A stretch of 64,000 nt of DNA from Lepidodermella squamata (lineage: Eukaryota; Animalia; Gastrotricha), in NCBI GenBank assembly GCA_047495785.1, contig JBLDXI010000054.1:2790001-2854000 (forward strand), in the 5' to 3' direction. A program made the position numbers and the translations under genes. Every line of letters starts with the position of its first letter. Position 1 is the stretch's first letter. Shown here piece after piece: positions 11,479 through 50,576 of this stretch. The notes beneath the pieces are model-generated. The model saw only the letters and a list, made by a program, of their open reading frames with translations, did no database searches and was not told the DNA's origin.

Positions 11479-13243
11479 TTATTTGTGAAAATTTAAGAAT
11501 TTCAGCCTCTTCGTCAACGAAGTCGTGAAACCAGGCCGCGAAATTTGCAGAATTGGAGCAACAATCATTTCAACCATCAGTAATTTCAGCGATATCCTAC
11601 AGAACGAACCCGACAGAACTACAGGGCCGTAGCTATCATGCAAAGCAAAAAGCAGATACGTTAAAATAACCGGCAGGTGAAATATCGCATAAGCGAGAAA
11701 GGAACACAGCGACTGCTTAGCTATGAAAGTCTCCCGGGTCAGCCAATTCAAATCTCCAGGATTTGTTGGTTTTCCGAACAGAGAATCACCAGCGCTTAGT
11801 GGTATGGAGTATCTTGAACTCGATTTAGACATGCTCTCGTGCACTGATCGAGCAGCTCGAACTGCTTTGAACAAATGCCTGAAATATAACAGTAATATTT
11901 AACAAATTTTAACGATGAGATCTATAACTATCTTATAACTATTCTTATAACTAAGAAAACATAATATTTTTATACTCGTGTACCTGCGGACTTTGAAATG
12001 GACTGATTGGACCTGATTTTTTGTTACTTTTGTATGCGGTATGACATCTTTTGTTGTTGAGCTCTCAACTTTGGGACACATGCTCGTAATAAATAATAAA
12101 TATAACAGCTTTCAGCGCACCAAAATCGAGGTTTCAGCAATCAATACTTCTAGCACTACTTTTTACCGTTTTTTGCTCGAGTTCGAATTTTTATTTCTTG
12201 ATCGATAATAATGCACCTTTTTATGACCTTATTATGAGTTTTTTATTTTTGGCTACCTGGTACAGTTAGCGAGGCAGAAAACTTTCTACTGTTGACCTCG
12301 AAGGCTGCTGATATCGGAAAAATCACTGCTTTGTAAAATCGATACTTTAAATCGATATCGGCGCGGAAATTGACCGCCGATGGTATATCGGTCAAGCTTG
12401 GTGTAAAAAATCTTAGATCCTGGGAATCCTTGAAATTCGAAAATCTATACTGTGGGAAAATCTACAGTGCTGGAGCCTCAAGTTTAACGCTGAAACTCTT
12501 AATTTAGGTTTTTCACTTGGCATAGCAATTTTACGAAAAAATTCGACCTACCAGTAATTATAGGCTAGCGTTGTCCCAGGAACGAAAGCAACAAATAAAA
12601 CTATCGATATTCTCAACTGCGACGAATCAATCGGGCCAATTTTGCTGTCGAACGGCGCGCAAATTGGGACAGGACTCGAAGCATTCGTAATTGGTACCAT
12701 TTGAACACTCTGTCCGTACGGGTAGATGGAAACTGGCGTGAGAACCAGGGTGACTAGAGCAAAAACTATCACAGCAGTTACAATAGCTTTTTGAACTCGA
12801 GGCTTTGACGTTGGTGCCTTCGATGTGATAAAAACTCTACGTTCATAGCTGATCAGCATCATGACGCACGGGCTGAAAACTGCCGTAGCGTAGGTCACCC
12901 AAGAAAACAGCTTACATTCGAAATCACCGGCCTCCCATTCTCCAGTCCTCAATGTTACTAACATTATAACAGTGTATTGAATGCAGAATATGGTGTTATT
13001 CGCCGCTAGGATGCTGACTAGGACTAGAAAATCCTTTCGAACAGCCCGTTTGTGGTAGACATAGACATTAGCGATATTCGACGCACAGACGCTGATTGTA
13101 AGAATGACTGATATTAAGGTGGTTGTTAGCCGTTCTTCGAATGACTGAAACGGAGTGTTGTAGAGAGCGATGAACCAATACCTAGGCTGTTCGAAGCCGA
13201 GGTGAGGCAGATTGGCGAAAATCCAGGAATCGTTGAAGGTCAT
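11479..13243 (-). CDS. Orphan rhodopsin-like (class A) GPCR
   Basis: Exons 13243-12552 and 11878-11479. Seven hydrophobic segments, ECL1 WEAGDFECK, TM3 end ISYERR (DRY equivalent), ECL2 Cys. Confidence 0.8.
12291..12362 (+). repeat. Dispersed ~72-bp repeat, copy A (in the GPCR intron)
   Basis: gttgac..gctgctgatatcggaaaaatcactgctttgtaaaatcgatactttaaatcgatatcggc. Aligns by eye with the reverse complement of 23762-23833 and with 62056-62107. Confidence 0.75.
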
Positions 13244-15565: not shown

Positions 15566-16698
15566 TTATTGGTCAATTATTTTTTCGAAAACACAACAAG
15601 TCACCGTGCGACCTTCACGGCTGCCGAAGCGGAACGAAGGCGTAGGCAATTCAATGACAAATCGCCATTTGTTTTTCACGCACCACGCTTCAATGAGTTC
15701 CTTTGTCGTCCAATTACACGAAGCTAGGATCAATTTTTCTGTCACGCAATCACTGACATTATCAATAAAGTTAGCCACCCGCTGCTTGTGAGCCTCCACG
15801 TCGCTTTCATCCGGCGGCCGTAGTGTTATAGCGTCGTAAGTTCCAACATCGACGCCCAAATCATACGGCTGCATTTTGGCACTTGGAACGCACAAATCGG
15901 CGCAGAAAAGTGAACGAATTGCTGAGGACCAGTTGGGCTTGCTGGCGGCGGATTTTTTCGCCAATTCTATCGCCGTTTCGGAATAGTCAACACCGTGTAG
16001 ATTCGTAAAACCGAGATCAGCCTAAAAATTTGAAACAAATTAACAGCTTAGAATTTTGAATATATTTTGAAATTTTGAAATATATCGAAAAAATATTTGA
16101 AAATATGGGAAATTATCCTAATTTTAGCGAGATTTTTCGAATTTTATTTGCGATTTTATTTATCATTTTGCGTGAAAACTAATTTTATTTTTTAGTTGTT
16201 AGTTGAAAAGTTTTTAGAAAAAGGGTGTCGAGATAAGCCCAATAGTGAGATCTATTATTTTAGGCATTATAATGAAATGGCGTTAGACTTGAAGAGCCAT
16301 TCGGGAAAATTTGGTGCTACAGCCCCATAACGGATAATAATTCGAAAAATAATTTCACGTAAAATTCTGATTATTTTACTAACGAGTTCCCGAAGCAATG
16401 CGCCATTTCCAGTGCCAATATCGATGAGTGATTTGCTCTTGTCAGCATTTTCCGACAAATATTTAGTCACAGTCCGAACAATACGCCGATCAAACCAACA
16501 TTCATTACCAACATCCACCTGTTGATGGGTCGACTCAGCTTCGATAAACCCACTCAGCTCTCTGCCATAATGTTTATCCCAGCTGTGATTGAAAAAAATG
16601 AAATAAAAAATCTGAAGTTCACAATATTTTCAAGCATACAATTCTTTGGTCCCCAATACTGAAGGCTCGATTTCATCTTCATTTTCACTCCCTGACAT
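15566..16698 (-). CDS. EEF1AKMT2: eEF1A lysine methyltransferase 2 (METTL10)
   Basis: Spliced product reads PSVLGTKEFWDKHYGREL..ECWF..DIGTGNGALL..GVDYSETAIELA..DVGTYDAITL..SCNWT..PSFRFG. ATG at 16698. Confidence 0.9.
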
Positions 16699-17043
16699 AT
16701 TATATTATTTAAAAAGTACCCTATATTTCGTGTCAAATATTTGGCAATTTTTATTTTAAATTTGCTTGTAGAAGCGCAACAAAACAGAACCGTGCTCAAA
16801 AACAACCCATGCAAATATAATAGAAGACTCGAATCTAGTGGCTATCGATGAGATTCACGCGTCGAAAAACTTTAGTCTGGTTCTATCACAGAATGTAATG
16901 AAAAAAATTAACTGCTGCAGCAGTCTATATAATTTCTCACAAATAAACGCGGTAAAAAGTGTTGTTTTCTAAATAATTCATTCGGAAGACCGGCAGAAAC
17001 AAACGCAGTGCATACAAAATTCCGTTCAGATTTTTCGTTCACA

Positions 17044-17439
17044 TCAATGTTTAAATCCGTTCGATTGCTGCTTATTCTTGTTACGCTTACGAGCCCGGTT
17101 AGAATACGACGATTTGTCATGTTCACCCTCAGATCCTTTCTCGTTTTCCTGATCGGACGAGTTCAATTTTTGATTCGCACGAGACGATTCGCCGCTGTTG
17201 CGCCGCTTTTGATTTTGCCCGTCTGATTTTTCGTCACTGTCAGTTTTCGCGCTAGGAGGCAGGACGAAGGCTGCGATGATGCAAACGAGTTGAAAAACCG
17301 CACCGAGAGCTATTCCGGCCTGAACAGCGTATTCATACCAGCGCATCGCCGTGTCGCTGTCTTTGAAATCGCGCTCATACACATATTTAGCAGGGTAATC
17401 GTCCAGATAATTCGGATTATCCGGCTCGAATGGGTCCAT
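17044..17439 (-). CDS. MANBAL: MANBAL/UPF0239-like small single-pass membrane protein
   Basis: GIALGAVFQLVCIIA matches the UPF0239 GLFLGAIFQLICVLA motif, followed by a basic C-terminal tail. Confidence 0.7.
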   Translation of the reverse strand: MDPFEPDNPNYLDDYPAKYVYERDFKDSDTAMRWYEYAVQAGIALGAVFQLVCIIAAFVLPPSAKTDSDEKSDGQNQKRRNSGESSRANQKLNSSDQENEKGSEGEHDKSSYSNRARKRNKNKQQSNGFKH

Positions 17440-17569
17440 TTTAAAAATAAATCTACAAAAAAAACAGTCAATAAATTAATTAAACGGCAGTTTATTGCAA
17501 GAAGAAGTACGAAAGTGTGCAGAATTTTTATTTTTTTTTCCCCGACAAAAAGAATCACAGATATTAATT

Positions 17570-18943
17570 TCACGAGGATTTAGCGGCGGTTAATTTTTCG
17601 AGAAGCTTCTTCAAATCGCTATCCAGAAACAACGCAACAGTCGAGTAGCGATTAACACGTGGTAGGTATTTGAAAAATTTCACCGTCGTATCGTCGAGAT
17701 CCCGTCCAGAAAAACACTCTACAATATCGCTCAGCATTGTAGATTCTAGAGATAGCCCGAAAAATTCCGGTAAGCGCTCCGAGTCGATTTTTCGAAGATA
17801 GCTGTACAAAGTTTCGCGATTCGATCGAATTGCACGAAGGTCGTTTTGAAATTGAAATGCAGTATTTGGAGGTTCGGGTACCGAGACCCAAGATTCGGGA
17901 ATAGGGGCGTAGACAAATCTCGGCGCTTGATTCCGCGTGTCACCAGCTTCGTCCGCTTTCCCCAGCTCTTTTACAGGCGATGTCGATTTCCATAAATGAG
18001 TCAAGTGCGCAACCTCTCGAATTGGAACTTGACTCAATTTATCGTCATCGCTCAAATCGCCGCCTTTCCAGTTTTTCACTGGCATAATGCCGAAATCTGG
18101 TGCGGATTCTGCCGGAATCGGGAACCAGTCTGGAATTTTTGATAGTGCCTCCTGCTCCACCATCAATTCAACAGCTTTAGAAATGCGAGTTTGCTCCGCT
18201 AATCTCTCAATTTCTTGCCTCGCTAATTTGTTGTTCGGCTCTAGATTCAGCACCGATTCGAAATCATCTTGAGCCTCTTCGAGTTTTCCCAGTCCAACAC
18301 GGGCAGTCGCTCGACGGAACAGGGCTTTAGTATTGCGCGGCTCAGAGTTTAGCGCCATTGTACAATCAGACTCGGCCTGTTCGAATTTGTCAAGTTTCAG
18401 ATAACAAATAGCTCGGTTCGATAGGAAAGTCGCGTTTCGGGGTTGGATTTTGATAGCTGCCGAATAGCATTCGATCGCCTCTTCATATTTCTTTTGACCA
18501 AACAGCTCATTGCCCTTCTCTTTATGCGCGATAGCTTCCTTTTCACGCTTCGGATCAGGGGTTGCGTCCTCTTCTTCGGAAGAAGATGACTTGAGAGCAG
18601 CATCGACGTCGAATTTATCCCAAGCTCGATAATCGTACGAACTTAGTTTCTTTTTCCCGGTACCATTCGACCCATTTTGCGCGACGTTTTCCTTCTTCTT
18701 CTCCTTGCTTTTGGAAGAAGGATTGCGAACTGGGGCAGCAGCTTGAGCCTGCTAAGAAGCAATCATAAGGTAACATAATTTAGATAGGAAATATGTAACC
18801 TTATCCACAGGTTGACCAAGCAGCTCCGCTTCTTTAGTCTTTATGTCTTTGGTCCAGTCATCAAGGTCTTTCAAATAGTCACCCAAGTCTTGCTGGTTTT
18901 GCTTCATTTGAATTTGAAGCTCAGCAAATCGGCTCGGATCCAT
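17570..18943 (-). CDS. RPAP3: RNA polymerase II-associated protein 3 (R2TP co-chaperone)
   Basis: Exons 18943-18800 and 18751-17570 (48-nt intron). ELQIQMKQNQQDLGDYLKDLDDW N-terminus, YDYRAWDKFDVD, a TPR clamp (KEKGNELF..SNRA..KALFRRA) and the RPAP3_C domain (PPNTAFQFQNDLR..LPEFFGLSLE). Confidence 0.9.
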
Positions 18944-19050
18944 TATGTAAGCGATAAAAGCCTAATAAAAGTCGGGAGATGCTTGTAATTAAATTTTACG
19001 AAATCACACCAATGTTTTGAAGACATAAATATTCAATGGAAAGAGCGACG

Positions 19051-19680
19051 TTAGCAAGGACTAGTTGTCGAGAGCAAAGTTGAGACGGCATTGTCAAACT
19101 GCCTATACAAGACCGGAATAATAAGATTAAAAATCACTTACAAGCGCTGAATACTTACTTCGAGGTTATTCGCTCACCACAGTTATAAAATGGATTGTAT
19201 AGCACCGAAACATATGCATTGTGGAGAAATCGAAACATCTATGATACCAACGCGAATGAATGGCAGCTATGCCGAATTATATGTAGCTTACGTTTTTCAC
19301 TTCATTGTCTCTTAGAACAGAATTAACAGCATCCACGACGACAACGAACTTGACGCCGCCATTAGTCACATAACCATAACTAGGTTATAAAAATGGGCAC
19401 TTGAATAGGGGCAGATAGTGAAATGAACTAACATTTTATACTCCTCGCACGGATATAGAGTACCCAGGTAGAGGTCTTGCATTTCCTTCTTTACTGTGAG
19501 CTTTGATTCAACAACATCCAATGAGGAGTGAACCATAAACTGAAACTGCAGTTGATCGGTAATCCCATCAGCACAGCGGAAATACAGAGGGTAATTCTGA
19601 ATATGAATGAATATTAGAAGGCGCAATTAATTAAAAACGCTGATTACCTCATTGGAAATAACAGCGACACAAGTAGCCAT
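19051..19680 (-). CDS. TRAPPC2L: TRAPP complex subunit 2-like (sedlin family)
   Basis: Five short exons join to [73 protein letters not shown]..NPFY. Confidence 0.9.
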
Positions 19681-23833: not shown

Positions 23834-24815
23834 ATCGAAAATTTGTCTACATACCTTAGACCAAAATTAAAAATCCTAACCAAGAAAGAATCATTTTGAA
23901 ATCTGTAATTTTTTGTGCTGGAATCCTAAATTTATGGTGGTTGACCCATTTTTTCTTCCATGATTTCGCACCTGTGTTTTTGAGAAATGACTTTGTTGTC
24001 ACCCGAGAGAAAAAACATGATTTATATCGCTTTATGAGGTGAAATAAAGTGCAACTATTTTTTTAATTTGCATATTTGTTGCAGCTCTGTAATAAAGATT
24101 CGAGCTGATGATCGCAGCAGTCTGGCGGAAGGGCGAGGCTGTATCTAATCGTTTATTATATTTATTGACTTTCATAATGTCGGTAAATACAGACTGAGTT
24201 ATCAAGAGACAGATCGCGTCCATTTCGCATGACTTGCGCGTGTGCTCTGATTTGAGGTCGCGCAGAAAATGAAACATATAGTACACAATGTGATTTGACG
24301 CACCGGAAAGCATTACGACGATACATGTATCCATGTCGCAAAATATTTGCTGTACATCATGACCACTGCCATTATTAGGGACCAACACATTCGTTGGTCT
24401 CCTAAGGCTGCGTGTGTCTGTCTCCTGTTGTTGCTATTTGTACTCAACAAAACGCATTATACACATTTGTGCGGCGCGCTTAGTGGCAGCGACGCGTATC
24501 ATCCCTCGGAGGGTGACCGGAGTCGATGATGTTGATGATGCAGTTGCAATATTTGTTACTAATAATAACAATATATAAATCGCTTTCCATACAACACACG
24601 CCATCGCTTCCTCATCGCCCTGGATCACTGCTGTCTCATGTTGTGATAATGAAGCGATGTATCGCGCCTCTTTCGTACTATTGTTATTAGGACTACTACT
24701 GATGAGTTAGCGCACACGCGGCCGCTTTTTCCATCTTTTGCATCCTACATTACGCCAAACCGCAGGTATACATTTATAACAGTTTTTCGCCGCACCTTTC
24801 CTACCGAACTGCGAA

Positions 24816-35167: not shown

Positions 35168-37643
35168 TCATATCGACCCGACATATTGCTCTTCGACCAT
35201 CAAATAGGAGGTCGATCCCACGCCGGCTCCCGTTGTCGAGTAATTGTCCAGAGCCCCTGCATCACACATTCCGATGTTAAGTGCAATTGTCAACGAACCC
35301 GCGGGAATTGGGGTTGCGCAGGTGCCTTCGACAAAGCGTGGGATGCCGTACGAGAAACCGGCAGTATTACGCCAGTTCTCCAACCAAGCCTGTATTTTGG
35401 TGTCGCATTCGTTCCCGTTGACAGTAATGAACCTTCAATGCCGTGGTGTTGAAGCATATGGAAGCAAACAGGATTTATAACTTACCAACGCTTGCATTCA
35501 CTAATAGCCGTTGATTGCCATATTCTGTAATTAGTGTTACCGAACCATTTGATATGGAGGGTAGAGGCATCTTGCAGCTTATTGTAAGTCATTGTCTGAG
35601 AATCGAATGGCTTTTTTAACTAACTGAGCCAACTTCAATTTACTCACATGAATCGCCTTGAAGCAAGCTGTACCAGTGCTCGAGCAGGAAGTGGTGAAAA
35701 CAGAGTACTTGCGGTTGAAGAAGGGAAGTCGGACCAGTTGTCCATCTGGCATCAGCAGAGAATTCATAGGTAAGTTCTCGTGGATTTCCTCGACAATCAT
35801 GTGAGCCTCTCGCTTTCGTCCAACTTCGGGGTCATAAAGAACCAGCTGATTGGGGCACCCGATGCCACCGCCGCATTGACAATCATACCATATAGCGATA
35901 TCGTAACGCCCAGCAGGAAGTCCTCGGCATATGCCGTCGACTGGAAAAATTAATTAGCCCTGTCTCTTGAAACTGAAGTCATAATTACGTGGCACCGATC
36001 GAGCGCCAGGCTCGGTTCGTCCGCTGCCGGTAGTGAAATATGCAGCCAGAAAAGACGCTTCAATAGAAGCAGGGTTGTTGCACAGCTGGTCATTGATGGT
36101 CACATAAAATCGGAGGCAATGATTGTTGAAGTCGTAGTATACGACCCCGGACCAGAAAATTCTCAGCGCCGAGGTATCACTTCGTTTTTTGTACTTGAGA
36201 GTTTGCTGCGGATTGCCAAACGAGGTAAAATATTAACGCAAAAGCAATCATACACTTACAAAAGGAGTAACACCATATGTGGCAACTGTGAGAGCGTTGA
36301 ACTGAGTGGAGATTGTGTTGTAAACAGTCAGGGATTGACATCGCGCTGAGTCATCTGTCGAAAACACTGAATGAGATTCCCTTAGAAACATTTCTTGCTT
36401 CTTACCGAGTTTCATGAGGTAATCAGCGGGAATGAACTCTTCAAAGTGGAAATACAAAATGCCATAATACGCTGGCTGGCCAAGAGTGGTGAAATCGTTG
36501 ATTGAAATCGTTCGGGTCCATGTAGAAGCCGATGACACATAAATCTTAATTTCGGTACTGCCCTTGGGCGCATCCACGGAAGAGCAGACATGTTCGTCTA
36601 TTAACACAGCTACAATCAAAGGACTTTTTATTTAGAAAGCTATTTCTACCATGATATGACTCGACGACGTAGCTGGTGGCAAAGCCTTGGCGAACGTGTC
36701 GCTCCCTATGAAATTGTTGATGCGAATGCGATCTGAAATTGAGAATGCGAATCTTACAAAGTATGTCGAATTCCCAGTTCTCCGGCACAATCTAAACCGT
36801 TGATCGTAACGTAGAATATAAAAATATCCGTCCCGCTCGAGCCAGTTTGATCCTTGAAGCCAAATGGAATATCCAGTGTGACCTTGATGTGAGTAAAATC
36901 GTGCTTCTTGTCAAATGTGTACGTCTGTGATTAACATGGTGTTTGGTCGAGAACTGACAAATAAATCAAGATTTTACCCTGAAAGCGGTTGTTTGCAGGG
37001 TTGCGTATTGAAATCTCGTATCGCTCACGACTCCGTAACCAACTCTGCGCGGGTAATCAAAACATCCTGACTCTTCCCCTGCAATATAAAGAAGTTATCT
37101 TAACTTAGGTTTTAAGTTGGATGCCTCCGTTGACAAACCTGAACAAAGTGGCGGAGCATTCGGGCAATCTTGCACACAAACTGGGGCGATGGTGTCCGAT
37201 GACCAAACAGTGCCCGGCATCGGGCAGAATGTGTCACAGTCAGGAACACCGTTGTTACGATCAGCCACGTAATCCATCAAAGATTGCGGTGAAATAAGAA
37301 TGCCGCTTATGCAAGTCGCTGTGTAGTTTCTGGTGTCGAACTCCATAGCCATGTCTTTGGGAGCTCGCAGCAAAATGCAAGCATTAGTTGTGAACTGGTA
37401 AATCGCTGATCGGCAACTAGGTCCTGTCGTTGCTAGGCACATACTGGTGCATTCCTCTGGGGTTGAAGCGTTTAGGAACGGCCGAATCATTTGAATATTC
37501 AGCGCTAAGTCTGTAAGATCGACAGTTATAGCGGTTTCCTGAGGCTGAATCAGCCGGGTGCATTGCCCACGAAGAATCATCTCCCCTGAGGTCAGGCTCA
37601 GGATTGAAAGTATTACTGATAATAAAGTAATCGGCCGATCCAT
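35168..37643 (-). CDS. Secreted protein: PAN/apple domain plus three tandem CTHRC1 C-terminal-like domains
   Basis: Signal peptide; PAN (EECTSMC..CRSAIY..CIL); three repeats of K...L.I...(RF/W)Y(V/I)T(I/V)NG..C...DG.C..P.G...I.I...(V/F)EE, resembling the CTHRC1 C-terminal domain. The last exon ends at 35168. Confidence 0.7.
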
Positions 37644-38237
37644 CTCAACTTTCCAATCTACTTTCGCTATTCTGTCTAGAAACCGTTTTTAGCCGTGAAC
37701 CGTGAAGAAGTGCCTTTGAGTGCGTTAATTATGAATGAGCCCCGAGGTGGCTTCGACGCCTCCTTTGTCGACTTCGAAGAAAGGACCATTGTTTTCATAA
37801 CGGACGAATCACCATTTCTCGCCTTTTCAGTGTGAAACAACTTGGAAACTGCATTGATCACTCGATTTCTATCACCTATATTGAAATGCATTAGTAATGA
37901 TCAAGTCAGTTGTTTGTTCAAAGACGGAAAAGATCTTTCAGAATCAATATTTTTTATTCTTTACTGACATACGACTCGACATGTTGTTGAATGATGTTAT
38001 AATACGAGTAGGAAATTAGCGATTTTGCATTATAATAATATCGACAATTTCGCTGACGAAAACAAGACAACAATAAAATTGCAGCGAAGCGTTTCAATTT
38101 TATTTTTCATTTTTTTCGATTTGATCAGATCAAAGCAGATATTTTATTCAAATTCACATCACGATAAAAATATTGATAAATTAAAGTATTCCGTTATTAT
38201 TCTTTGAATTTTTATATTTATTGGTGGGTTGAAAAAT

Positions 38238-40406
38238 CTACTCCGCGTTCGACTCGCTTGTTCGACAGCTCGACGTTGATCGGTGCGAGTTCGAACCCGG
38301 TAAGCCAAGGTGCGCGCTGGGCGAGCTCAAATTCATGCTACTGCCGCTGCATCTGTGGTGGAGACACGACCCGGGCGGGGTTGAAAGACGGCCATTACTG
38401 ACGTCTAGATTCGCCTGTTGAAGGGCGAGCAGCACGGCTACTCGGTCCAACTCGTCCTCAATCGACGGCTGGTTGTCGATGACCACCTCGCCCGATCGCT
38501 CGCCGAATAACAACAGCATTTTAACGCGGTAGTCGACGATTTGCGTAATCGGGTTGCCGGCTAGATTGGCGGATCTTACCATCGGCAGCCGGCTCAGCTG
38601 CTTCACATTCGCGATCGAGTCCAGCTGGTTGCAGGACACGTCTAGTACCTCGATTCCGCACTTGCTCAGGCCTTCGAGATTGCTGAGTTGGTTGTAGCTG
38701 ATGTCGAAGGTCTTCACGTTGCCAATGTGGCGGCTGAAGTTCTCCAGCGATCGAATACGGTTGTGGCTGAGATTCAGGTGTTGCAGTTTCACGCAGTGTT
38801 CCAAGTGCTCGATGACTGAGATTTGGTTAAAACTTAGGTCCAGGTATACCAAGTTCGAAAATGCTTGCTGAAATAAGAAAAAACTCATTTAATTTCAATT
38901 TCATTCGATTTTCTTCAAAATTCGAAAGTTGAATTTGACAAAAATTGAGCTAATTTTACAACATTACCCAACACTTTTTATACTGACAGGTAAAAATCAG
39001 GTAAAAATAAAAAAATTCTAAAAAATTTCTAGGAAATTTCCCTTGCCCACTCTGATTCACAATTCAAAATCCTTGCAGCAAAAAAACCTTTGAATGAAAA
39101 GTTTTTCATCTTTCAAAAAAAATTTAATATTCGTATTAAATGTTAGAATACATCCCCAAAAATGAAAATAATTTCTAAATTACATTTTAATTATTTTAAG
39201 ATGGCTTACCAAGCTTTCATCGATTTCTGAAATCGAATTATTGGCAAAATCGATTGATTGTAGTGTTTTATTTGAGCGTTTCGCAAGTTCGCGCGGCAAG
39301 AATGTACTCATCGAAGTCAGCGATTTGTGAACGTGTAAATGCACTAGGCCGTCGAGAATCGAACCGAACCCAGAAATATTGTTCGCATCGCTATTTGTTA
39401 TCTATAATAACGAAATAAATACAATTTTAAGGAGAAGTTTTTAAATAAAAATTATGCGAGCTATATAATATTTTAGCTAGCAATCTTCTCACTTTAACAG
39501 TTCGTTTCAACTCCGCCTTAAAAAAATTTCCACAAATTCGTCATGCTGTAATTATTCTAATACTTACAACTAGAGTTCGAACAGATCGAAACGGCGATAG
39601 GTCGAAGCAGAGCCGATTCGGTACGATGTTGCTGGTCCCCAACGGCTGATCTGAGCCTTCAATTTTCAGAAATTTAACCGCTCCAAAGAACTCGAGAATA
39701 GTCGCCAAAATCACATCAGGACTCGAGCTGTTTTTATTGCCATTTAAAGACGAAGTCGGAAGGGGTGAAACACTTGTGGCCGGCAATTTTAGCCGCTCGC
39801 AAACCGCGTGCAGCTCTAGCGGCGTGATCGTAAATGCCTCTTCTGCCTTCACCATCCGCTCCATCGCATCTGAGCCGAGGCGATTCGCTAAAGTATCACA
39901 GATAGAGTTGATTTCATAGCGTGGAAAATCGAGGAAATCGGCGAGTTGTTTCGGCAAAGCGCCGAGCTTATGTACAACAGTCAGCAAATACACTTCCAGG
40001 TCGTTTTGCCGCTGCTTTATAAACGCCTCGTTCTGAATATACATAGATTTTTTGCTTGGAAAATTGACATTATTCAAATCATAAGACTCCATCAACTGAA
40101 ACAAAAAATCGAAAATTTAGTCATATTTGACGTAATTTTTACCAAAACTCACTTCGTTGTGAAGTTTGAAAAAATCACTGTAACGACGTTTCACTTGCCA
40201 TGTGTACAAATCAACAGAAACTTCAATCGTAAAAAACTGCAAAAATTAAAAATAAATTTTGAGGCGGATCAAATTTTTCGGAAAATTACTATTGCACCAC
40301 TTCTCATCCAATCGTCTGCCACATAGACTTGTTGCCGCTCATAGCCGGTCAAACGAAGGATTTGAGCTGATTTCTGCAGCGAAAAATCCGAGGTATATAG
40401 CGCCAT
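38238..40406 (-). CDS. NISCH: Nischarin-like protein (PX + LRR only)
   Basis: Multi-exon. PX domain (VKRRYSDFFKLH, FPSKK..FIKQRQNDLEVYL), FTITPLELHAVCERLKLP, LKIEGS..LGTSNI, LRRs, LAGNPI..DYRVKML..VIDN..ELDRVAVLLALQ. Confidence 0.85.
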
Positions 40407-40531
40407 AATTCAATTATTATAATAAAATCATCTATAAAAAAGCAATAATTTATTAAAATATTATTTCTGAGGTAAAAATAAATTTGCGAAAAAACCGGCT
40501 TGAATAAGAAAAATGTCAAAGCAGAAATATA

Positions 40532-41724
40532 TCAAACAGAGTGTTCACCGTACTTGGATGGTTGTTGAAAAGTCACAGTTTTAGGAGTCAATTTCTTATT
40601 AGGATCATCAAAAATTTCCAAAAGTCCACTATGCCACAAATTTTCAATTGAATCAGCAACTGCATTAGCTGTCGAGCGTTGATAGCCGCCGCTAGTTACC
40701 ATGCAAATCGGAATGCCAAGCGTTCGAACTGATGAAAATACGATTTCATCACGAAGTGCAACGCCTCGGGGAGAAATTGATAGTCGCCCCAACGGATCAC
40801 CGGCCATTATGTCCGTACCAGCGTTATAGACAACAAAATCCGGCTTTTCTACCTCTAACGCATGTACCAAGCCACACCTCACCAAATCTGTGTATTTTTC
40901 ATCGCGTATACCGGATTCTAGATGAATCGGATATTGAATCGCTCCTAGTTTCAAAAAAATCCACCATAAATTTTGAAATAATTGAATTATTTCACGCACT
41001 TTTTGCCGGGTGATCTCCTGGATAAATATTAGGATTAAATGCGTCTAAAATCACAACACGTCGATCGTCCAGAAAATCACGTTCATGCCCGTTGCCTTGA
41101 TGGGCGTCTAAATCGACGATCAAAACTTTGCGTAACGAGGTATCCATATCGAGTAGAAATTTAATGCCAAGTTGAATATCGGCATACACGCAAAATCCTC
41201 CGCCAGAATCGGACGAACAGTGATGAAAACCGCCGCCAATGTTGATTGCCCAGCCAAATTTGCGCGCTAGATAGCACGCAAGCACTGTTCCACCCGTTTG
41301 AAGTCGCAACGATCGCAGTAATTTTCGTTGCAGTAATTTATTAGGTACGCAAGCGACGCACGGAACTTCGGTTATTCCGGCTAAAACCGAACTCCAAGAT
41401 AGCGATTTTAAATATCGCTCAGTATGAACGGCCAGTAAATCTGATTTGTTCACTTCCTCCGGTTTCACGCAACTGGTTTCGCTCGACAAGATTTTCTTCT
41501 CTAAAAAAATGACAAAAATAGAGATTATTGATTTGATTCTGGAAGTTCCTACCAATCAAAAACTCGACGATTCGACCCCATTTTCCAGTGTCAAATGGAT
41601 GAGCTTTTTCCAAGCCCCAAGCTGTAATATTGTAATTAGGATGGTATACAAAAGGAAGTTGGCCAGATTTCCTATCCAATTCTTTCAATAAATGAGCCGA
41701 ACTTCCGAGCTTGGTCAAATCCAT
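40532..41724 (-). CDS. HDAC11: Histone deacetylase 11
   Basis: GLEKAHPFDTGKWGRI, QTGGT, WAINIGGGFHH, GGGFCVYADI, DLDAHQGNGHERDF, YNAGTD..GDPLG, SGGY. Confidence 0.95.
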
Positions 41725-41778
41725 CTTAAAAATCTAGATAAAAATTAAGAATTTAAGATTTAAATATGAGCTGATAAT

Positions 41779-42447
41779 TCATTTCTTTGAAGATTTGTTG
41801 GAAGGTTTGGAAGACTTAACAACCTGCCAGACTTCACCGTCCTCATCGACCACGGTTTCAACTTTACTGGATTTTGCACCTGAAGCACCTGATGAGCTTT
41901 CTTTAGCTGATATTTCATCATCACTCTCTTCCTCTGAGCTGTGAGGCGAAACCATGTCGACTTCATCTGGATTTCGACTAGAAATCGGCATCTCAAAATA
42001 AGGATTAATAGCCGGCAATTCTTGAGCCATTTCTTTCAATTGCTCCAAATTCTGGCTTTGGTGAATTTTATATACTGAGTAGACTTGTTGAGCTGTAGTC
42101 GGCAAAGATCCGTCGTCAACAATCAAATTAAATTCCAGATTGAGAATATCGGCGAGAAAATCTTCGATTTCGAATTTTTCTAGGTCGGCTGAAAACATGC
42201 GGTTTTAAATAATTTTGCGGTAAAAAGCGGTATATATTACCATTGCAAATCATCCATTCAACAAAAGCAGTTGGGATCCATTCGGCTTTTTCGCGAGACT
42301 GAACACCGCCGGCTCGGTTTTCAACACCCAACTAAACACGGAAATTGAATATACGAATAATAATTTGCATGAAAACTAGCTAACTCGAAGAGCCTTCCAG
42401 TTGGTTAAGATTTTCTGCAGGCATTCGAGCAGAATTTCGTCCGCCAT
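41779..42447 (-). CDS. TSR2: Pre-rRNA-processing protein TSR2
   Basis: Three exons. NWKALRLGVENRAGG..KAEW, IEDFL..LEFNLIVDDGS, and an acidic tail ending DEDGEVWQVV. Confidence 0.88.
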
Positions 42448-42531
42448 TCTCAATAAAACCACCTATTCATGAAAAATGAACGTGCGAAATCACTGTAATG
42501 AAACGACAGATGTTGTTATGAAATAATAACA

Positions 42532-44113
42532 TTAATTCGAGGCAAATTTGAGCACAACTGAAAGTGTTTTCGGTAGTTTGGAGTCTGCGACTGAAATCGA
42601 GGAACCATCGCGAAGTCCAAACTCGTCGAACAGATTTTTCTCAAGATTAGCGTGGGTAGCTTCAATAACCGGGATGTAGAGAGATATGCTGGAACCATCG
42701 GACGAGTTTGAAGTGAGAGATGGCTCTTTCAAATCCCTTAGATCAAAGAAATTTTAAATATGCCTGGTTTCAGATGAAATAACTAACAATTTTTCCTTTA
42801 ACATGGCCAACAGCTTAGCGACAGTTGCTGATGTTTCAACTGTAATCGGAATCGGTTTGTTGCTACAGGCCGGGCAATTTTCTTTCCGCTCAGTAGGAAA
42901 AGCAAAGCCATAAACGCCTTCGATCTGATTGAAATTCATGAAACCTTCAGCGTAGTCGAAAAGCGTAGACCCTTTGTATAGCCCGGTGAGCAGTTTAACA
43001 ACCTCCATGCAACACAAACCCGCAATGACAGCATTTGTCGAAGCAACGGCGGGGATAATTCGTTTAACGACGCCTTGAGTTAGTCGGTAAGTCACGCCTG
43101 AAATGTTGAAACTTTTAGCGCGGTCGAGGGCACGTTCGAAAATCCATTGGAGATGACGAGGATCGTCGCCATCAACGCCGACGTCTGTACCAAAGGGCCA
43201 CTCTTTTTCCCACATGATGATTCGCACGAATTCGACGCAATGTTCCGGCAATCTGGGGCTACTGGCGATTGTGCAAAGGGGATAATTGACTTGAGGAGGG
43301 TACAAGTCCATTGTACATTCAACGCAGGCAGTCATCCCAGGAATAACGACGCGAATGTTTCCTTTTAAACCTTCAGTGCCTCCATCAATAATGGGAATAA
43401 TACTGCCCGGGTCCAATTCACCATTATCATCATATGCCAGAAGGCTGCACTGAAAATTATCAGACGTCAGGAGCTAATTCAGCAGCGTAACTATAACTTA
43501 CAATCATTCCGTTTAACCAACGTCTAGCGCCAATTGAATCTAAACCACACAGGACAATTCTGAATTGGCTGTAAAATTCGGGGCCGAAAGCTTCGATAGC
43601 GGAATGATGGGCGGTGACTTGGCATTGAGGGAAGTGGCGCTGTACAAACGCAGCAGCGACTTGAGCTTTAGATTTTCCAAGGTCATCAGTGCTATAGTAA
43701 TACCTATATTATTCATCAGGTCCTTGCATCGACGATATGCATACCTGAACATAAATTGCCGGTTCAAATTAGATAGATCGATGGTATCCAAATCGATCAC
43801 GCTTATTTGACGCATGCCAAGAATAGCCTGATACAGGCGACAAGTTCAAGATAGCAAAGCAGCAAACAACAAAATAGTTTACTAGATTTTTCAGGAACTC
43901 ACAGCCCAAACCACCAGCGCCAATTACCAAAATCGGAACGTCACGAAGCAAATCGAATGTCTACGCATATATTAGAAAATAAGCATGAAGTTCAATTCAA
44001 ACCATCCCCTGGACTCTCACCTCTGGAGGGCACGAGTAATTAGCATCGTGCAGCGAACTGGGCGCAGTAAGCAATCCATATAGTGGATCACTATGTAATT
44101 CGGCGTCAGTCAT
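42532..44113 (-). CDS. UBA3: NEDD8-activating enzyme E1 catalytic subunit
   Basis: [46 protein letters not shown], catalytic [27 protein letters not shown]-terminal E2-binding domain. Confidence 0.95.
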
Positions 44114-45699
44114 TTCAAAAAATTAAGTTATCTGAAAAGTCAATCCACACTGTGTCATTTCAATATGCCATATGCCCATTAGTTTATTGTATCTGACCCC
44201 TTAACTCTCATCCCAAAAATTTACTACAATCGCAGAAATAAGTAACTATCAAGAGACGAGAAACAAAGAGCAAGGTTTTAGGTTTTACAGAGCATCCAAA
44301 AAGCCCGGAGACTCTTGGAGTGATTGTAGAGACGATTGCGATTGCGATTGCCTATAGCAGATGAGAGCTGCGAAGACAAAAATCAAGAGCCATACAGTTT
44401 ATCAACAAATATTAAAATAATCTGAAAGCCTAGATTTTTCAACGAACTACAATAGACGCAAATTTATGTTGCGTGCGATAAGAATTTGAAATAAACAGAT
44501 AACACCCGGCAAGAGAAAATAACTAAAGAGCATGATACCGCGAGGTGTCAAACGATGCTATCCCTATTTTGTGATTAATCCGCCGGAAAATAAAAAAAAA
44601 CACTTGAAAAATCCCCAACAAATATAAAAAGTATAGTTATTTAGTTATGACATATATTATATAATATAGTCTATATTTATAAAAATCACCATTTAACAGC
44701 AATTTACATGAATTATTATAAATAATTCAAATTTTTGGCGGGCTTCGATTTGCGAGTTTGTAAAAAACCATCGGCACTTTTCAACTCCCTGGAAATCTCC
44801 GATTCTTCTGTCTTGTGTGACCTAGGACCTCGGACGTCTGACTCTATTCTTGATCAATCTTACGATTCGATTTTTGCTCAGAAAAAATCGCTAGACTCGT
44901 TGGGCTTTGGTTTTTACCCTCCCGTTTGTATTGAAAAAATGCAATAAAAAATAATCAAGGATTCTTATTCTGATTGTTTTTATCAATTATCAAGCTTCAA
45001 GCTGGATTATTATAAGCCGGGCCTCTAGCCTCTATTGATCGATTGGTGTGGTTAGTTTGTAATTTGACGGGCTTGGGAACCATATTCTTTCAGCAAAGCC
45101 CAGTGGAGTGGACTTGAATATTGTCGAGCAGCTTAGGCGAATGTCGCTCAACGTCTAACAGCTGTAGGTTGACCCATCCTTCAAAGAGTTACGAGTTACC
45201 TCTAGTTTGAGATATCCTCATTCCTCATAGTTTAATTTTCATCGCCTATATTACCATTTTGCCACACCATTTCGGAACAAATTTAATTCTGAAACCCTCT
45301 TCCTTGGGATTTTTTATTCACGTTGCATATGATAGCTATACTACATAGTATTTCGCCAACAACGAACCGCTGTTGCTTATGATAGTTTTTCCATCCTCCC
45401 TCCTTTTATTGTCCCTTTAGCAACCGCGCATTATACAATGTCTTTTTTGTTGCGAGCAATTGATAATCGATAAATCAGATACTCGAGATATTTATACTCA
45501 TCATTTCGTTTTCTTGTTCCTAGTTTCTCGTAGTTGGATCGCACGGCGTGTGTAACATCAAGTTGCTAGTTACTTTATTTCAGATATTATTCTACGATTG
45601 ATTAAGTATGTAACATTTAATCACATTTATTCGGAATTTAGCGCTCGTTTGTCTACCGTAGGTTTTTTGAACGCCGATTTAATCATTGCTCCCAACAAC

Positions 45700-45963
45700 A
45701 TGGCCGATAAAATCTATTACTCGGAGAAGTACACAGATGCGGAGTATGAGTACCGTCACGTTATCATTCCCAAAGAAATGGTAAAGATGCTGCCTAAGAA
45801 TCACCTGATGACCGAAAGCGAATGGCGCAGTCTCGGTATTCAACAAAGTCAAGGCTGGATCCACTACATGATTCACACACCCGAGCCTCACATCCTCCTC
45901 TTCCGACGACCCCTCCCAGAAGACCAGAAGCGCGCTGCCCAAGCACAAAATGGCCACAAATGA
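45700..45963 (+). CDS. CKS1: Cyclin-dependent kinase regulatory subunit
   Basis: [61 protein letters not shown] at 45700. Confidence 0.97.
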
Positions 45964-46284: not shown

Positions 46285-49200
46285 ATGACCTCGAAAATCT
46301 ACGTTGCCACCGCTGGTGACGATATTAGATTTTGGCAGGAAAATGAGCAGACAGCTTTGGCGAGAATCAGCTCAGTTCCTGGTCCGATTAATTGCATGGA
46401 CTGGAGCGATTCAGGCCTGCAAGTAGTCGCATGTAGTCAAGTTAACAATCCCCTATCAATCGTGAACATATCGCCAGATTTGAAACTCGCACCCTCAGTT
46501 AACACAACTACGCTATCGCAACTACCAGGTCACGCATCCGTCGTAGCCCTCGGACACGATCAAAGCAACGCACACATCGCAGTTGGGTATGAAGAAGGAA
46601 AGATTGCTGTTGTTAACAGCCGTACTTCAGAGGTGATCAAGACTCTCCCGCATCCAGATGGGAAACATTCGATCATGTCGCTGTGTTTCGACACAAGCGA
46701 TACGCGATTAGCCGCTTCGGACGATTCCGGAAATATTCTTGTCCATAACGTGATTCAAGCCATCCACGGCAAACCTCTGCCTCAAGCTGATGGAGCTATT
46801 GTGCAGCAGGTTAAATTCAGTCCCCACAAAAAAGGATTGCTTGCATCTGCGGCTGATAGTGGCTCAGTCACGATGTGGGACGTATTCAAATCGGTTAAAT
46901 TACACACTTTCGCGAAACTTCACTCGATGCCGGTTACTGGCATCACGTTTTCGCCCCTCAACGATATGCTCCTCCTCACCGCTGGTTTGGATAAACAGTT
47001 TTGCTGTTTAGATTTGCGGAAAAATATGTAAGAAATTAATTTTGAATTTTTCAAATAATTTTAATTAATTTGTGCCAATTTTACAGCGTTGTTAAGACCC
47101 TCCACACAGATTCGGCGATCTCATCGATGGATTTTCATCATGAAGGCTGGGCAGTGGGTCTCGGTACTACTCGTGGCCGGCTGCTGATTTACGATCTTCG
47201 CCAGGCTAGTCGGCCGATGAAAGAAATCGCTGCTCATCAAACGTCGGTTAAAACGGTCAAATTTGCATCGAAGGTGAGCTTGAAAAATTGTCCCCATTCC
47301 TATAATGGACTTTAATCATAATTAATTTCAGAGCTGCGTTCTCACATCGGCTCACCTTCAGTCGAAGAACACTGTTTCCTCACCGGTCGCAACATCGAAA
47401 AATAAAAGTGAGTTATTTTTGTAAATATTTTACGGTCATTTCATATCAAATTCCTGTACATGTTTGGACAACTAGTAATATTTATTTTGAGATTAAGCTG
47501 ATGGAGATTTATTTTTTACCTGTAACCAGCGATTACTTATTGATTGTGAAGTTATTACTGAAGTGTTGTACAAATGCATCGAATAATTTCCCTCTAATTT
47601 GAGTCTAATTACGTCAATAATGCGATCGGTCAAATCATATTTACCTACAGAGGGGGGTGGGAGACGATTTGCATATAATATTTAACCATCTGCGAATTTG
47701 ATTTGTGTCTAAGGTATGTATCTCATCCGAAACCGAGCTTCGGTCTCAGAGCGCTAAAGCGAAAGCCGCGCTCTTTAAAACAAAATAAAAAAATGAAGAT
47801 GAGCAGCAATGCCGCGCTTGTACGTTGGTAAATTTGCTGCCCTAACTCAGCCTCTCATTGTGTCACAGGTGCGTTGTCAAGAGATAGACAGGTGCCTTGT
47901 GACGCAATGGCAAATTTTGGCTGTTTTTAATGGAAAATCTGTTCAAATTGCAGGACTGTTTCAGCGTGTTTCGGATTTTCGTGATATTTGATCGATTTTA
48001 ATTCTCGATGTCAAGGTTTCGCAATTCAGAACCTTTTGCGACCGAAAATACTTGGAATTCTAGCCAATCTGAGACCCCTGTTGAATCACGAATCGTTTCC
48101 ATTTTATATAGTTTCATCCGAATAAAAGACGGAATTGCGAAATTCTGATTTGAAATTATAAATTAACTCTCAAGTCTGATGAATTTTTTCGAGAAAATCA
48201 CATTACGCATTTCATTTTTTTTTGTTTCTTACCACACTTTTCTTTGGGAATTTCACCCACCACACCGCTATTTTTCTGATATTTTTATTATCAAATACGC
48301 AAACGCCTGCGCGATAATAGTTGCTCCTCTGTAGTTACGTAATTTATTTTGGCAAATAGACCCTTTTCATTGCGTGATTGAGAAGTAATTTTTCGAGAAT
48401 GATTGCAATTTTTAATATAATTACTTCACATGCATTCATCAAATATGTGCAGCGATTTAGACTTATCGAGGGCGGACTGAAATGAATTCGCCTTAAATTT
48501 TAACCATCTGCGAATTTGATTTGTGTCTAAGGTATGTATCTCATCCGAAACCGAACCTCGGTCTCAGAGCGCTAAAGCGAAAGCCGCGCTCTTTACAACG
48601 AAACAAAACAAAAAGTAATAACAATCAGCATGTTATGCTAGCCATTTTGCATGGGTAGCGCAACCAGCTTACTTCAACCAGTTTACTCAGTGTTGTGGCT
48701 TGCGGCCCAGCCTCTTTGACCTGGGGTTGGCCTGGGGTCTTGTGTATTTTTATTTTCGAACAATAAAATATTCCATGTTGCTAAATTCCCGAAAAAATGT
48801 TCCTCCTTCCGTTGACACGGAAAATGTGCTTTTGTGACGTTATAATCGTATCGAACCGCTTATGGATGAATTTCGTCTCTTAAAATAAAACTGTTCAAAT
48901 AAGAAACCCTTCAAAATGAAAACTTGCACGCCAAATGCCTTTACGTATGAGCAAAATGAGCTTATTTTAAGCATTATTTGTTGATGATAGGAAATATTCT
49001 GAAGGCATTTGAAAAAATTGGGATAATCTCATACTATAAAATAGTTTCTCAGCTGAAGTAGACACTTATGTCAATATTTTCGATCAAATATTCATCTCGA
49101 ATTGGTGTTCCATGTCTTGAGTGGTATGCCTTGAATGGTGCGGAGCAAAATTTGGTAGTGTGAAAATTTAACCATCTGCGAATTTGATTTGTGTCTAAGG

Positions 49201-50576
49201 TATGTATCTCATCCCAAACTGAGCTTCGGTCTCAGAGCGCTAAAGCGAAAGCCGCGCTCTTTAAAACAAAAACAAAACAATAATAAGGAAAATATTTGCT
49301 ACACGCTGATTTACCTGTCACCATTTTGATGGCGTTTCATGCTGTTCACCAGTATATCACGGGAATTTAGCATAACTATCTTGAATTTTTTTCCTAAATT
49401 TTCGAAATATTTATTCGGCCATTTTCATAGACGAATATAATAATAATAACTTTTTTTCTTATTTTCAGACAGCACTTCGACGGCAATTTCTCCGTTATGT
49501 GCCAACGAGAATACGATGCGGTCTACATCAGTCAACTCGACAGTTTCAAACGACTGTCTATCCTCATTTTACATGAAGCCGGACACAGCAATGCGAGCAG
49601 CCGAAATAGAGATGAATCGTGAGTTGGGAAAATTTCTCAAAAATTCCTATGATAATAGCACGATATTTCAGAGAAAACTCGGCTGCTGGAAGCTCAGCGA
49701 ATGTTGAGTCAAACCCCGCTGACAACCTCCTCAGGCATGGACCCTCTCATCGCGGACGCTGAGAACATTTTCAGATCTCAATCAGTCGACATCATACCGA
49801 ATCGACAACGAATGGACGATACTTTTCGCTCGACGACAGCGGAAGTCCGAAATTTGTCACCGATCAGCTCGCGTGGGACAGGTAAGTATACCAATTTCTA
49901 AGGTGGATTTTTTGTAATAACTTACAATTAAGGTGGCATTCTAAGAAGCGAGTTCAACGTCCCGAATGCGGTGAATCGGCCCCTACCCTCGGCGGCTTCG
50001 ACCCCGTTTCACGCCAATGTCACTCGAAACAACGCGATGTCGACTATTTCAAGCCTACCGAGCCGGATCCCAATCGACAGTATTCGACCTGATAGCGCTA
50101 GTTCGTATACTAGTGCGACTTCGCATGTTGCGAACGCCCTTCCAGTCGCGACGGAAGACTCGTGGTCACCCTCACCCGAGCCGCCGTCATTAAGTGTAAC
50201 CCTGAAAGAGAAAGGCTGTGATATTCACACTCAAACGATTGTAGTCGGCGAGTTGCCGCCGTTGACCGATCAAAAGGACGCGTCGTGTCAAACTGAGGCG
50301 GCTTTCGTATCAGGAGCAGTGTCTCTCGACGATTTCACCAACATCCTAGAAGATAAGCTTAGTCCTATCGAAGAGAATGTGAAGCGGCTTCAAGCGCGGT
50401 TAATAGCTGAAACGTTTGATCAAACGGCTGCGTTGCGGCGTATTATGCGCGAAGAATTGTCGCCGAATGTTCAATTGCAAGCGGAAATCGAGCGGTTGCG
50501 AGCTGAGAACGACCAGTTGCGGCGCGCCTTGTCGTCGTACGACGCCAAATTATTTAATACGAGCTTACGTCTTTGA
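46285..50576 (+). CDS. NEDD1: NEDD1 (gamma-TuRC targeting factor; WD40 + C-terminal coiled coil)
   Basis: AGDDIRFW start; WD40 repeats (H..PVTGITFSPLNDMLLLTAGLDK; GTTRGRLLIYDLR); S/T-rich linker; C-terminal LQAEIERLRAENDQLR. Contains a large intron at 47408-49468. Confidence 0.85.
47684..47774 (+). ncRNA. Candidate spliced-leader (SL) RNA gene, copy 1
   Basis: 30-nt putative exon AACCATCTGCGAATTTGATTTGTGTCTAAG, donor GTATGT at 47714, hairpins ACCGA-gct-TCGGT and AGAGCGC..GCGAAAGC..GCGCTCT, and an A-rich 3' flank. Three copies in one intron. Confidence 0.6.
48502..48592 (+). ncRNA. Candidate SL RNA gene, copy 2
   Basis: Identical to copy 1 except for the hairpin loop (gct to acc). The flanks are not alignable with copy 1. 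Confidence 0.6.
49170..49260 (+). ncRNA. Candidate SL RNA gene, copy 3
   Basis: Identical exon, donor and 3' hairpin. Two substitutions, one of which turns a C-G stem pair into U-G and so keeps the pairing. Confidence 0.6.

Follow-up and report, generated by a model that had tools for sequence, protein, structure and literature searches.

The sequence analysed here is a 64-kb window of the Lepidodermella squamata contig JBLDXI010000054.1, whose minus strand carries four complete, co-oriented genes in the order UBA3 > TSR2 > HDAC11 > nischarin-like. The functions of these genes are unrelated and of the housekeeping type, and the run is considered below as a candidate operon resolved by spliced leader (SL) trans-splicing. 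The minus strand of positions 37800-44600 was read directly and the exons were rebuilt from it; the resulting gene models are listed in Table 1 together with the spacers between them and the SL RNA candidates found elsewhere in the window.

Table 1. Features of the four-gene run and of the local SL RNA candidates (positions in the window).
Feature	Coordinates	Strand	Details
Gene 1, UBA3 (NEDD8-activating enzyme E1 catalytic subunit)	42532..44113	-	ATG 44113; stop 42534-42532; 6 exons; 436 aa
Gene 2, TSR2 (pre-rRNA processing)	41779..42447	-	ATG 42447; stop 41781-41779; 3 exons; 187 aa
Gene 3, HDAC11-type histone deacetylase	40532..41724	-	ATG 41724; stop 40534-40532; 3 exons; 361 aa
Gene 4, nischarin-like PX-LRR protein	38238..40406	-	ATG 40406; stop 40240-40238; 5 exons; 516 aa
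Spacer 1	42448..42531	-	84 nt; TSR2 acceptor ...catgaatAG at 42464-42463
Spacer 2	41725..41778	-	54 nt; zero GT; candidate acceptors AG 41735-41734 (...tttttatctAG) and AG 41726-41725
Spacer 3	40407..40531	-	125 nt; AATAAA 40454-40449; acceptor ...cttttttatAG at 40433-40432, 16 nt past AATAAA
Divergent intergenic region, UBA3 (minus) versus CKS gene (plus)	44114..45597	.	~1.5 kb; sole space for a promoter of the run
SL RNA candidate, copy 1 of 3	47684..47786	+	leader ends ...TCTAAG, then GTATGT
Local candidate leaders (30 nt), three copies	47684-47713, 48502-48531, 49170-49199		each followed by GTATGT

The identities of UBA3, TSR2 and HDAC11, which had been assigned in an earlier note on this DNA, are upheld by domain and homology evidence, part of which comes from a metagenome relative described below. 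The UBA3 product contains a ThiF domain and is 56-61% identical to named NEDD8-E1 catalytic subunits, and the relative's open reading frame (ORF) carries E2_bind. TSR2 is recognized by the WGG domain (PF10273), which is recorded for the exon 1-2 ORF of the relative and for which exon 3 of the window's gene alone scores 23.6 bits, slightly below the cut-off of 26.8; a word-based protein search with TSR2 exon 3 gave no match in the protein collection. The Hist_deacetyl domain PF00850 extends over exons 2-3 of HDAC11, and the relative's ortholog is nearest to clusters named 'Histone deacetylase 11' both by features (0.97) and by structure (TM 0.87/0.97). The assignment of the fourth gene to NISCH stands only in part: the LRR domains are clear, and in the atlas the closest clusters, nischarin/PX at 0.87, are a lead only. 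The PX domain is spread over exons 1-3 and reaches Pfam significance in no single exon. The predicted protein does not have the long C-terminal region found in vertebrate nischarin. For UBA3 and TTLL9 the best named matches, at 55-61% identity, are scattered over spiralians and deuterostomes, none of them being a close relative.

The run of four genes has clear limits, because the 1.5 kb upstream of UBA3 is free of minus-strand genes and the next minus-strand ORFs 3' of the nischarin-like gene, including a PAN-domain ORF (37095-37643), are at least 346 nt away. Within 44114-45597 no minus-strand ORF of at least 60 amino acids was found except antisense to CKS; the CKS domain (45598-45960) and, beyond it, NEDD1 are both encoded on the plus strand. 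An acceptor-like TTTTCAG is present at 44133-44132, 19 nt 5' of the UBA3 ATG, and at the opposite end of the run an AATAAA follows the nischarin-like stop codon by 21 nt. The 13 local introns measure 51-342 nt and have loosely T-rich acceptors, the GC content of the window is ~42%, and a tRNA search of the window found none.

The stop-to-ATG distances given in the earlier note match those obtained by direct minus-strand reading exactly. The AGs it quoted before TSR2 and the nischarin-like gene, the acceptor before HDAC11 (41735-41734) and the AATAAA preceding the nischarin-like AG were all located as claimed, and its statement that the TSR2-HDAC11 spacer is free of GT was borne out by the printed sequence. 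In that spacer an AATGAA hexamer overlaps the TSR2 stop codon. All three spacers, here and in the relative, fall below the 250 nt within which intercistronic distances of operons typically lie, and an operon is favoured by how short the window's spacers are against the at least 346 nt that separate the run from the next ORF on its strand and the 1.5 kb that separate it from the divergent gene. Each spacer holds two or three AGs, which were scored with a weight matrix built from the 13 local introns and compared with all AGs in the window. The scores of the TSR2 AG (5.6) and the HDAC11 AG at 41735-41734 (5.3) are reached by ~6% of window AGs, the alternative AG at 41726-41725 scores 4.7, and the nischarin-like AG scores 11.5, a value reached by fewer than 2%. 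On sequence alone the predicted acceptors thus exceed chance only weakly, and since the motifs are weak the case for an operon rests on the RNA data.

Three public sequencing runs cover the stretch, one of DNA (X2) and two of RNA (X1 and X3), and their assembled contigs were compared with the window over 6,000 letters. In the contigs of X1 and X3, 12 of the 13 introns are missing, each bounded by GT..AG on the minus strand; the contigs of X2 are unspliced, with both haplotypes present. Only the first UBA3 intron (44020-43961) is without contig coverage, introns 2-5 of this gene being removed in the RNA contigs. Of the TSR2 introns, both are removed in X1 and one in X3, both HDAC11 introns are removed in X1, and all four nischarin-like introns are removed in X1 and/or X3. 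Two haplotypes up to 5% apart (9/180 bases) occur together in X2 and X1 at 43270-43449, 41048-41126 and 39904-39934; these pairs point to a highly heterozygous, possibly clonal animal, and X1 also has variants absent from X2. One low-depth X1 contig links opposite strands in a 166-nt intron (39425-39523; joint 39459/39543) at the site of a 15-nt inverted repeat, and this joint is probably a hairpin-mediated artefact of complementary DNA (cDNA) synthesis.

A non-genomic leader at the predicted AGs had been named in the earlier note as a check, and such a leader can be read on the gene-4 RNA contig exactly at 40433-40432. The X1 contig of the nischarin-like mRNA continues for 34 unmatched letters past 40417, of which 30 are displayed and read, in mRNA sense, ...TCGATTTTCGAATTCTAAG followed by ATGATTTTGTT. 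Realignment reveals that the final 11 of these letters are genomic 5' untranslated region (UTR), in which this allele has one mismatch and a deletion of 3 nt. The true junction is therefore placed at AG(40433-40432)|ATG, and the preceding 19 bases (~23 with the four undisplayed) are non-genomic. These observations demonstrate SL trans-splicing at the gene-4 acceptor. The AAG with which the leader ends is the ending of most known leaders (Table 1 of PMC3795323).

That the leader is instead an assembly or template-switch chimera, or else a distant 5' exon joined in cis, is highly improbable. It is carried by a single contig from a SMART-type library, in which the furthest HDAC11 cDNA end (X1, 41707) bears the library adapter, but the junction lies exactly at an AG whose score of 11.5 places it in the top 2%, and the leader ends in TCTAAG, the same six bases as are found before the GT donor in the local SL candidates. 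A distant exon is further contradicted by the search of the remaining 23.5 kb of the window upstream on that strand, where no site matches the leader with up to three mismatches, introns in this genome being 51-342 nt. The sole site in the window with three mismatches (12429-12447) lies on the downstream side, is at chance level and was rejected.

The trans-spliced nischarin-like mRNA opens immediately after the leader with a 4-codon mini-ORF (40431-40417, ATG ATT TTA TTA TAA), which lies 25 nt 5' of the main ATG. The other allele in the RNA retains the 4-codon mini-ORF despite a substitution and the 3-nt deletion.

At TSR2 the evidence comes from the structure of the assembly graph, in which contigs of these runs that meet at a branch share exactly 30 bases (records 4/5/6, 8/9 and 10/11). 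Record 4 of X1, which represents RNA because it is spliced at 42787-42737, extends from UBA3 across all 84 nt of the spacer and ends at 42435. On the exon-1 side of its first junction the TSR2 mRNA contig is exactly 80 letters long and hence starts at 42464; the 30-mer node common to both contigs, 42435-42464, thus opens with the AG predicted as the TSR2 acceptor. With the 30-base overlap, the end of record 4 and the start of the TSR2 contig place the branch exactly at this AG. Total depth at 42471 and 42480 is that of record 4 alone, so that the third incoming path is non-collinear with the genome, and the DNA run X2 crosses the acceptor in a single unbranched contig (record 13). A non-collinear 5' end at the gene-2 acceptor, 42464-42463, is in this way shown indirectly. 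The SL-TSR2 junction piece would measure only ~50 nt, which would explain its absence among the contigs.

RNA continuous with spliced UBA3 crosses the TSR2 acceptor unspliced. Together, the branch at the TSR2 AG and the passage of the UBA3 contig through spacer 1 constitute the pattern expected of a polycistronic precursor plus its trans-spliced product. It is probable that UBA3, TSR2, HDAC11 and the nischarin-like gene form a true four-gene animal operon. In such an arrangement a single promoter in the 1.5-kb divergent region 5' of UBA3 would give rise to one pre-mRNA, every upstream cistron would be cleaved and polyadenylated within its short spacer, and every downstream cistron would acquire its 5' end by SL trans-splicing at an AG that precedes its ATG by 9-25 nt. 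We infer that the four genes are transcribed together from one promoter and that the HDAC11 acceptor is used.

The main rival explanation is that the four genes are transcribed independently in a compact genome, each from its own promoter in the upstream gene or spacer, and that their monocistronic pre-mRNAs are trans-spliced; the RNA over spacer 1 would then be UBA3 3' UTR or read-through. Trans-splicing alone does not imply an operon, as is evident from chaetognaths, in which about half of genes are trans-spliced and only 18% are in operons (PMC12460157), and RNA crossing spacers 2 and 3 was not observed. Independent transcription is nevertheless unlikely, given that RNA passes the TSR2 acceptor in unspliced form and that the 54-nt spacer, devoid of GT, is too small for a 3' end plus a promoter. 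Additional evidence on this point comes from a comparison with a relative.

The relative is represented by two metagenome contigs in ENA, L001 and L002, which are 99.8% alike and belong to one species; they were reached through a UBA3 fragment that is 80% identical over the part aligned by word search (63% by tblastn). The order and orientation of UBA3, TSR2, HDAC11 and the nischarin-like gene there are those of the window, and the spacers measure ~91, 91 and 228 nt, each containing a good acceptor 43-46 nt 5' of the ATG. Protein identity between the window and the relative is 44-77% and the spacers cannot be aligned, which indicates that neutral sites are saturated; that the spacers have stayed short while non-coding DNA has reached saturation argues against independent promoters. 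The conserved gene order, on the other hand, is accounted for by general synteny under that explanation. A second operon-like run of the window (15566-19680), TRAPPC2L > RPAP3 > MANBAL-like > EEF1AKMT2, is seemingly conserved in the same metagenome relative, where RPAP3_C and UPF0239 ORFs lie on one strand adjoining TTLL9 (L004 5389-7838). With this run and the flanking genes also syntenic, conserved order is not specific to the four-gene run and serves as supporting evidence only.

The relative differs from the window beside UBA3. A GH38 gene is located in the divergent region there, no gene being inserted within the four-gene run and the spacers still being short. This gene, an intronless alpha-mannosidase of 1014 amino acids between CKS and UBA3 (L001 4617-7661), is absent at window positions 44114-45597 and represents a gain or a loss. 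A more distant contig with UBA3, L003, was left out of the synteny comparison on account of its shortness. A scan of JGI metagenomes for relatives of the nischarin-like gene gave no match.

A partial or hybrid operon, comparable to the hybrid operons of C. elegans, would be an intermediate arrangement in which UBA3 and TSR2 are co-transcribed and HDAC11 and/or the nischarin-like gene also has an internal promoter. Read-through RNA at spacer 1 only would fit such an arrangement, as would the fact that spacer 3 is the longest both here (125 nt) and in the relative (~228 nt). There is nothing direct against it, but the proven trans-splice site in spacer 3 lies 16 nt past an AATAAA, as expected if 3' end formation is coupled to trans-splicing, and a hybrid operon is considered even less likely than four independent genes.

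Several observations weigh against the interpretation of the whole run as one operon. As regards a precursor across the spacers, a spliced RNA contig spans spacer 1 only, and a contig does not prove a single molecule spanning two genes. The RNA contigs leave uncovered the 54-nt spacer and the 5' ends of both HDAC11 and UBA3 (44030-44229 for the latter), and X1 depth is zero over 40430-40629. The case for TSR2 is a graph inference, and no leader sequence was read there. The contig that bears the leader stems from a run labelled as another organism, with 95-99% identity. The flanking CKS and NEDD1 genes are syntenic in the relative too. Finally, searches for an SL RNA gene encoding the observed leader gave none in the window (up to three mismatches) and none in JGI metagenomes (leader plus GT).

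The last point bears on the source of the leader. According to the earlier note, the operon is served by an SL RNA candidate ~4 kb away; trans-splicing at the predicted AG agrees with this proposal, whereas the donor does not, because the observed gene-4 leader and the local 30-nt leader have only their last six bases, TCTAAG, in common. Homology between the two leaders was rejected as unproven, the best alignment score being matched by 11-15% of shuffles, so that their overall similarity does not exceed that of shuffled sequence (p ~0.1). The best explanation is that the donor of the observed leader is an SL RNA gene outside the window and other than the three local candidates, and the genome seems to contain at least two leader types. 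A full-text search for either leader, as DNA or as RNA, returned no paper.

The local candidates themselves fold no better than shuffled sequences and contain no canonical Sm site. Rfam at gathering thresholds reports no SL RNA or other family in the whole window, and nematode SL1 has no match in the window with up to three mismatches. A fourth occurrence of TCTAAGGTATGT, at 23849, was rejected as a copy of the SL gene. The NEDD1 intron that houses the three candidates spans ~2.4 kb in the window (47280-49670) as compared to a gap of ~130 nt between NEDD1 ORFs in the relative (L001 2373-2502), a difference indicating that the candidate SL genes are a lineage-specific insertion.

SL-resolved operons are known in nematodes, tunicates, flatworms and chaetognaths (PMC12460157, PMC3795323), and the present run can be compared with each of these systems. 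Like the SL2-type operons of C. elegans, it consists of co-oriented, unrelated housekeeping genes in close succession (~100 nt apart in the nematode), with a leader at an AG just before the ATG of downstream genes and with the polyadenylation signal of the preceding gene placed a short way 5' of the trans-splice site. Unlike in C. elegans, the spacers are as short as 54 nt and the leader is unrelated to SL1/SL2, as indicated by the absence of an SL1 match and of any Rfam SL family. In tunicates (Ciona, Oikopleura) intercistronic regions are very short and the 3' end and the next acceptor nearly coincide, to which the AATAAA located 16 nt before the proven AG corresponds. This 16-nt distance, together with the 54-nt spacer, recalls tunicate operons more than the ~100-nt C. 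elegans type, a resemblance judged from spacing; tunicates have a single leader class, however, and the leader found here is unlike the chordate consensus in Table 1 of PMC3795323.

The chaetognath Paraspadella gotoi likewise has several different leaders and operons of housekeeping content (PMC12460157). Operons of this species are defined as genes that have a spliced leader and are separated by less than 250 bp, its SL genes are reported in ribosomal DNA (rDNA) clusters, and no operon-specific leader has been found in chaetognaths (PMC12460157); they differ from the present case in leader sequence and in belonging to another animal group. Flatworms (Schistosoma and others) are spiralian, as is the host, and the local 30-nt candidate starts with AAC, as has been noted for flatworm leaders, but the latter are 36-37 nt long and end in ATG (PMC3795323), whereas both leaders described here end in AAG. 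The rotifer leader (23 nt, GGCTTATTACAACTTACCAAGAG) is similar in length to the leader portion of the contig (~23 nt) and differs from it in sequence and in its ending, GAG as opposed to AAG (PMC3795323). The best rotifer (Brachionus) protein match is not closer than the annelid and nemertean matches (57% versus 58%).

The kind of system is thus known, while both the leader and the lineage are apparently new. A literature search for gastrotrichs and trans-splicing returned no report in substance, and the genome paper of Lepidodermella squamata mentions neither trans-splicing nor operons. Gastrotrichs are placed as the sister group of flatworms. The locus might be taken as direct evidence that Gastrotricha use SL trans-splicing to resolve operons and have two or more classes of leader, one of which might be preferred at downstream genes like nematode SL2; such a generalization is tentative and, at present, rather doubtful. 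If it were true for Gastrotricha, the question of a single origin of SL trans-splicing in the gastrotrich-flatworm clade would be reopened. Operons resolved in this way are known in only a small number of animal groups, and it is debated whether they have a single origin or several (PMC12460157, PMC3795323). To this debate the locus adds a case backed by RNA, in which the leader is read on the fourth, downstream cistron at the predicted acceptor, and it would become a test case for operon evolution in spiralians if a lineage without an earlier report is confirmed.

The largest intron of the nischarin-like gene (342 nt, 38868-39209) displays a further peculiarity. An inverted-repeat search of this intron, terminal repeats included, found none that would accompany an insertion. 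Joints in the DNA run X2 skip 306 nt (38882-39189) and 68 nt (38923-38992) of it, and many loose ends of the same run fall at 38991-39024, seemingly reflecting the polymorphic insertion of a repeated element.

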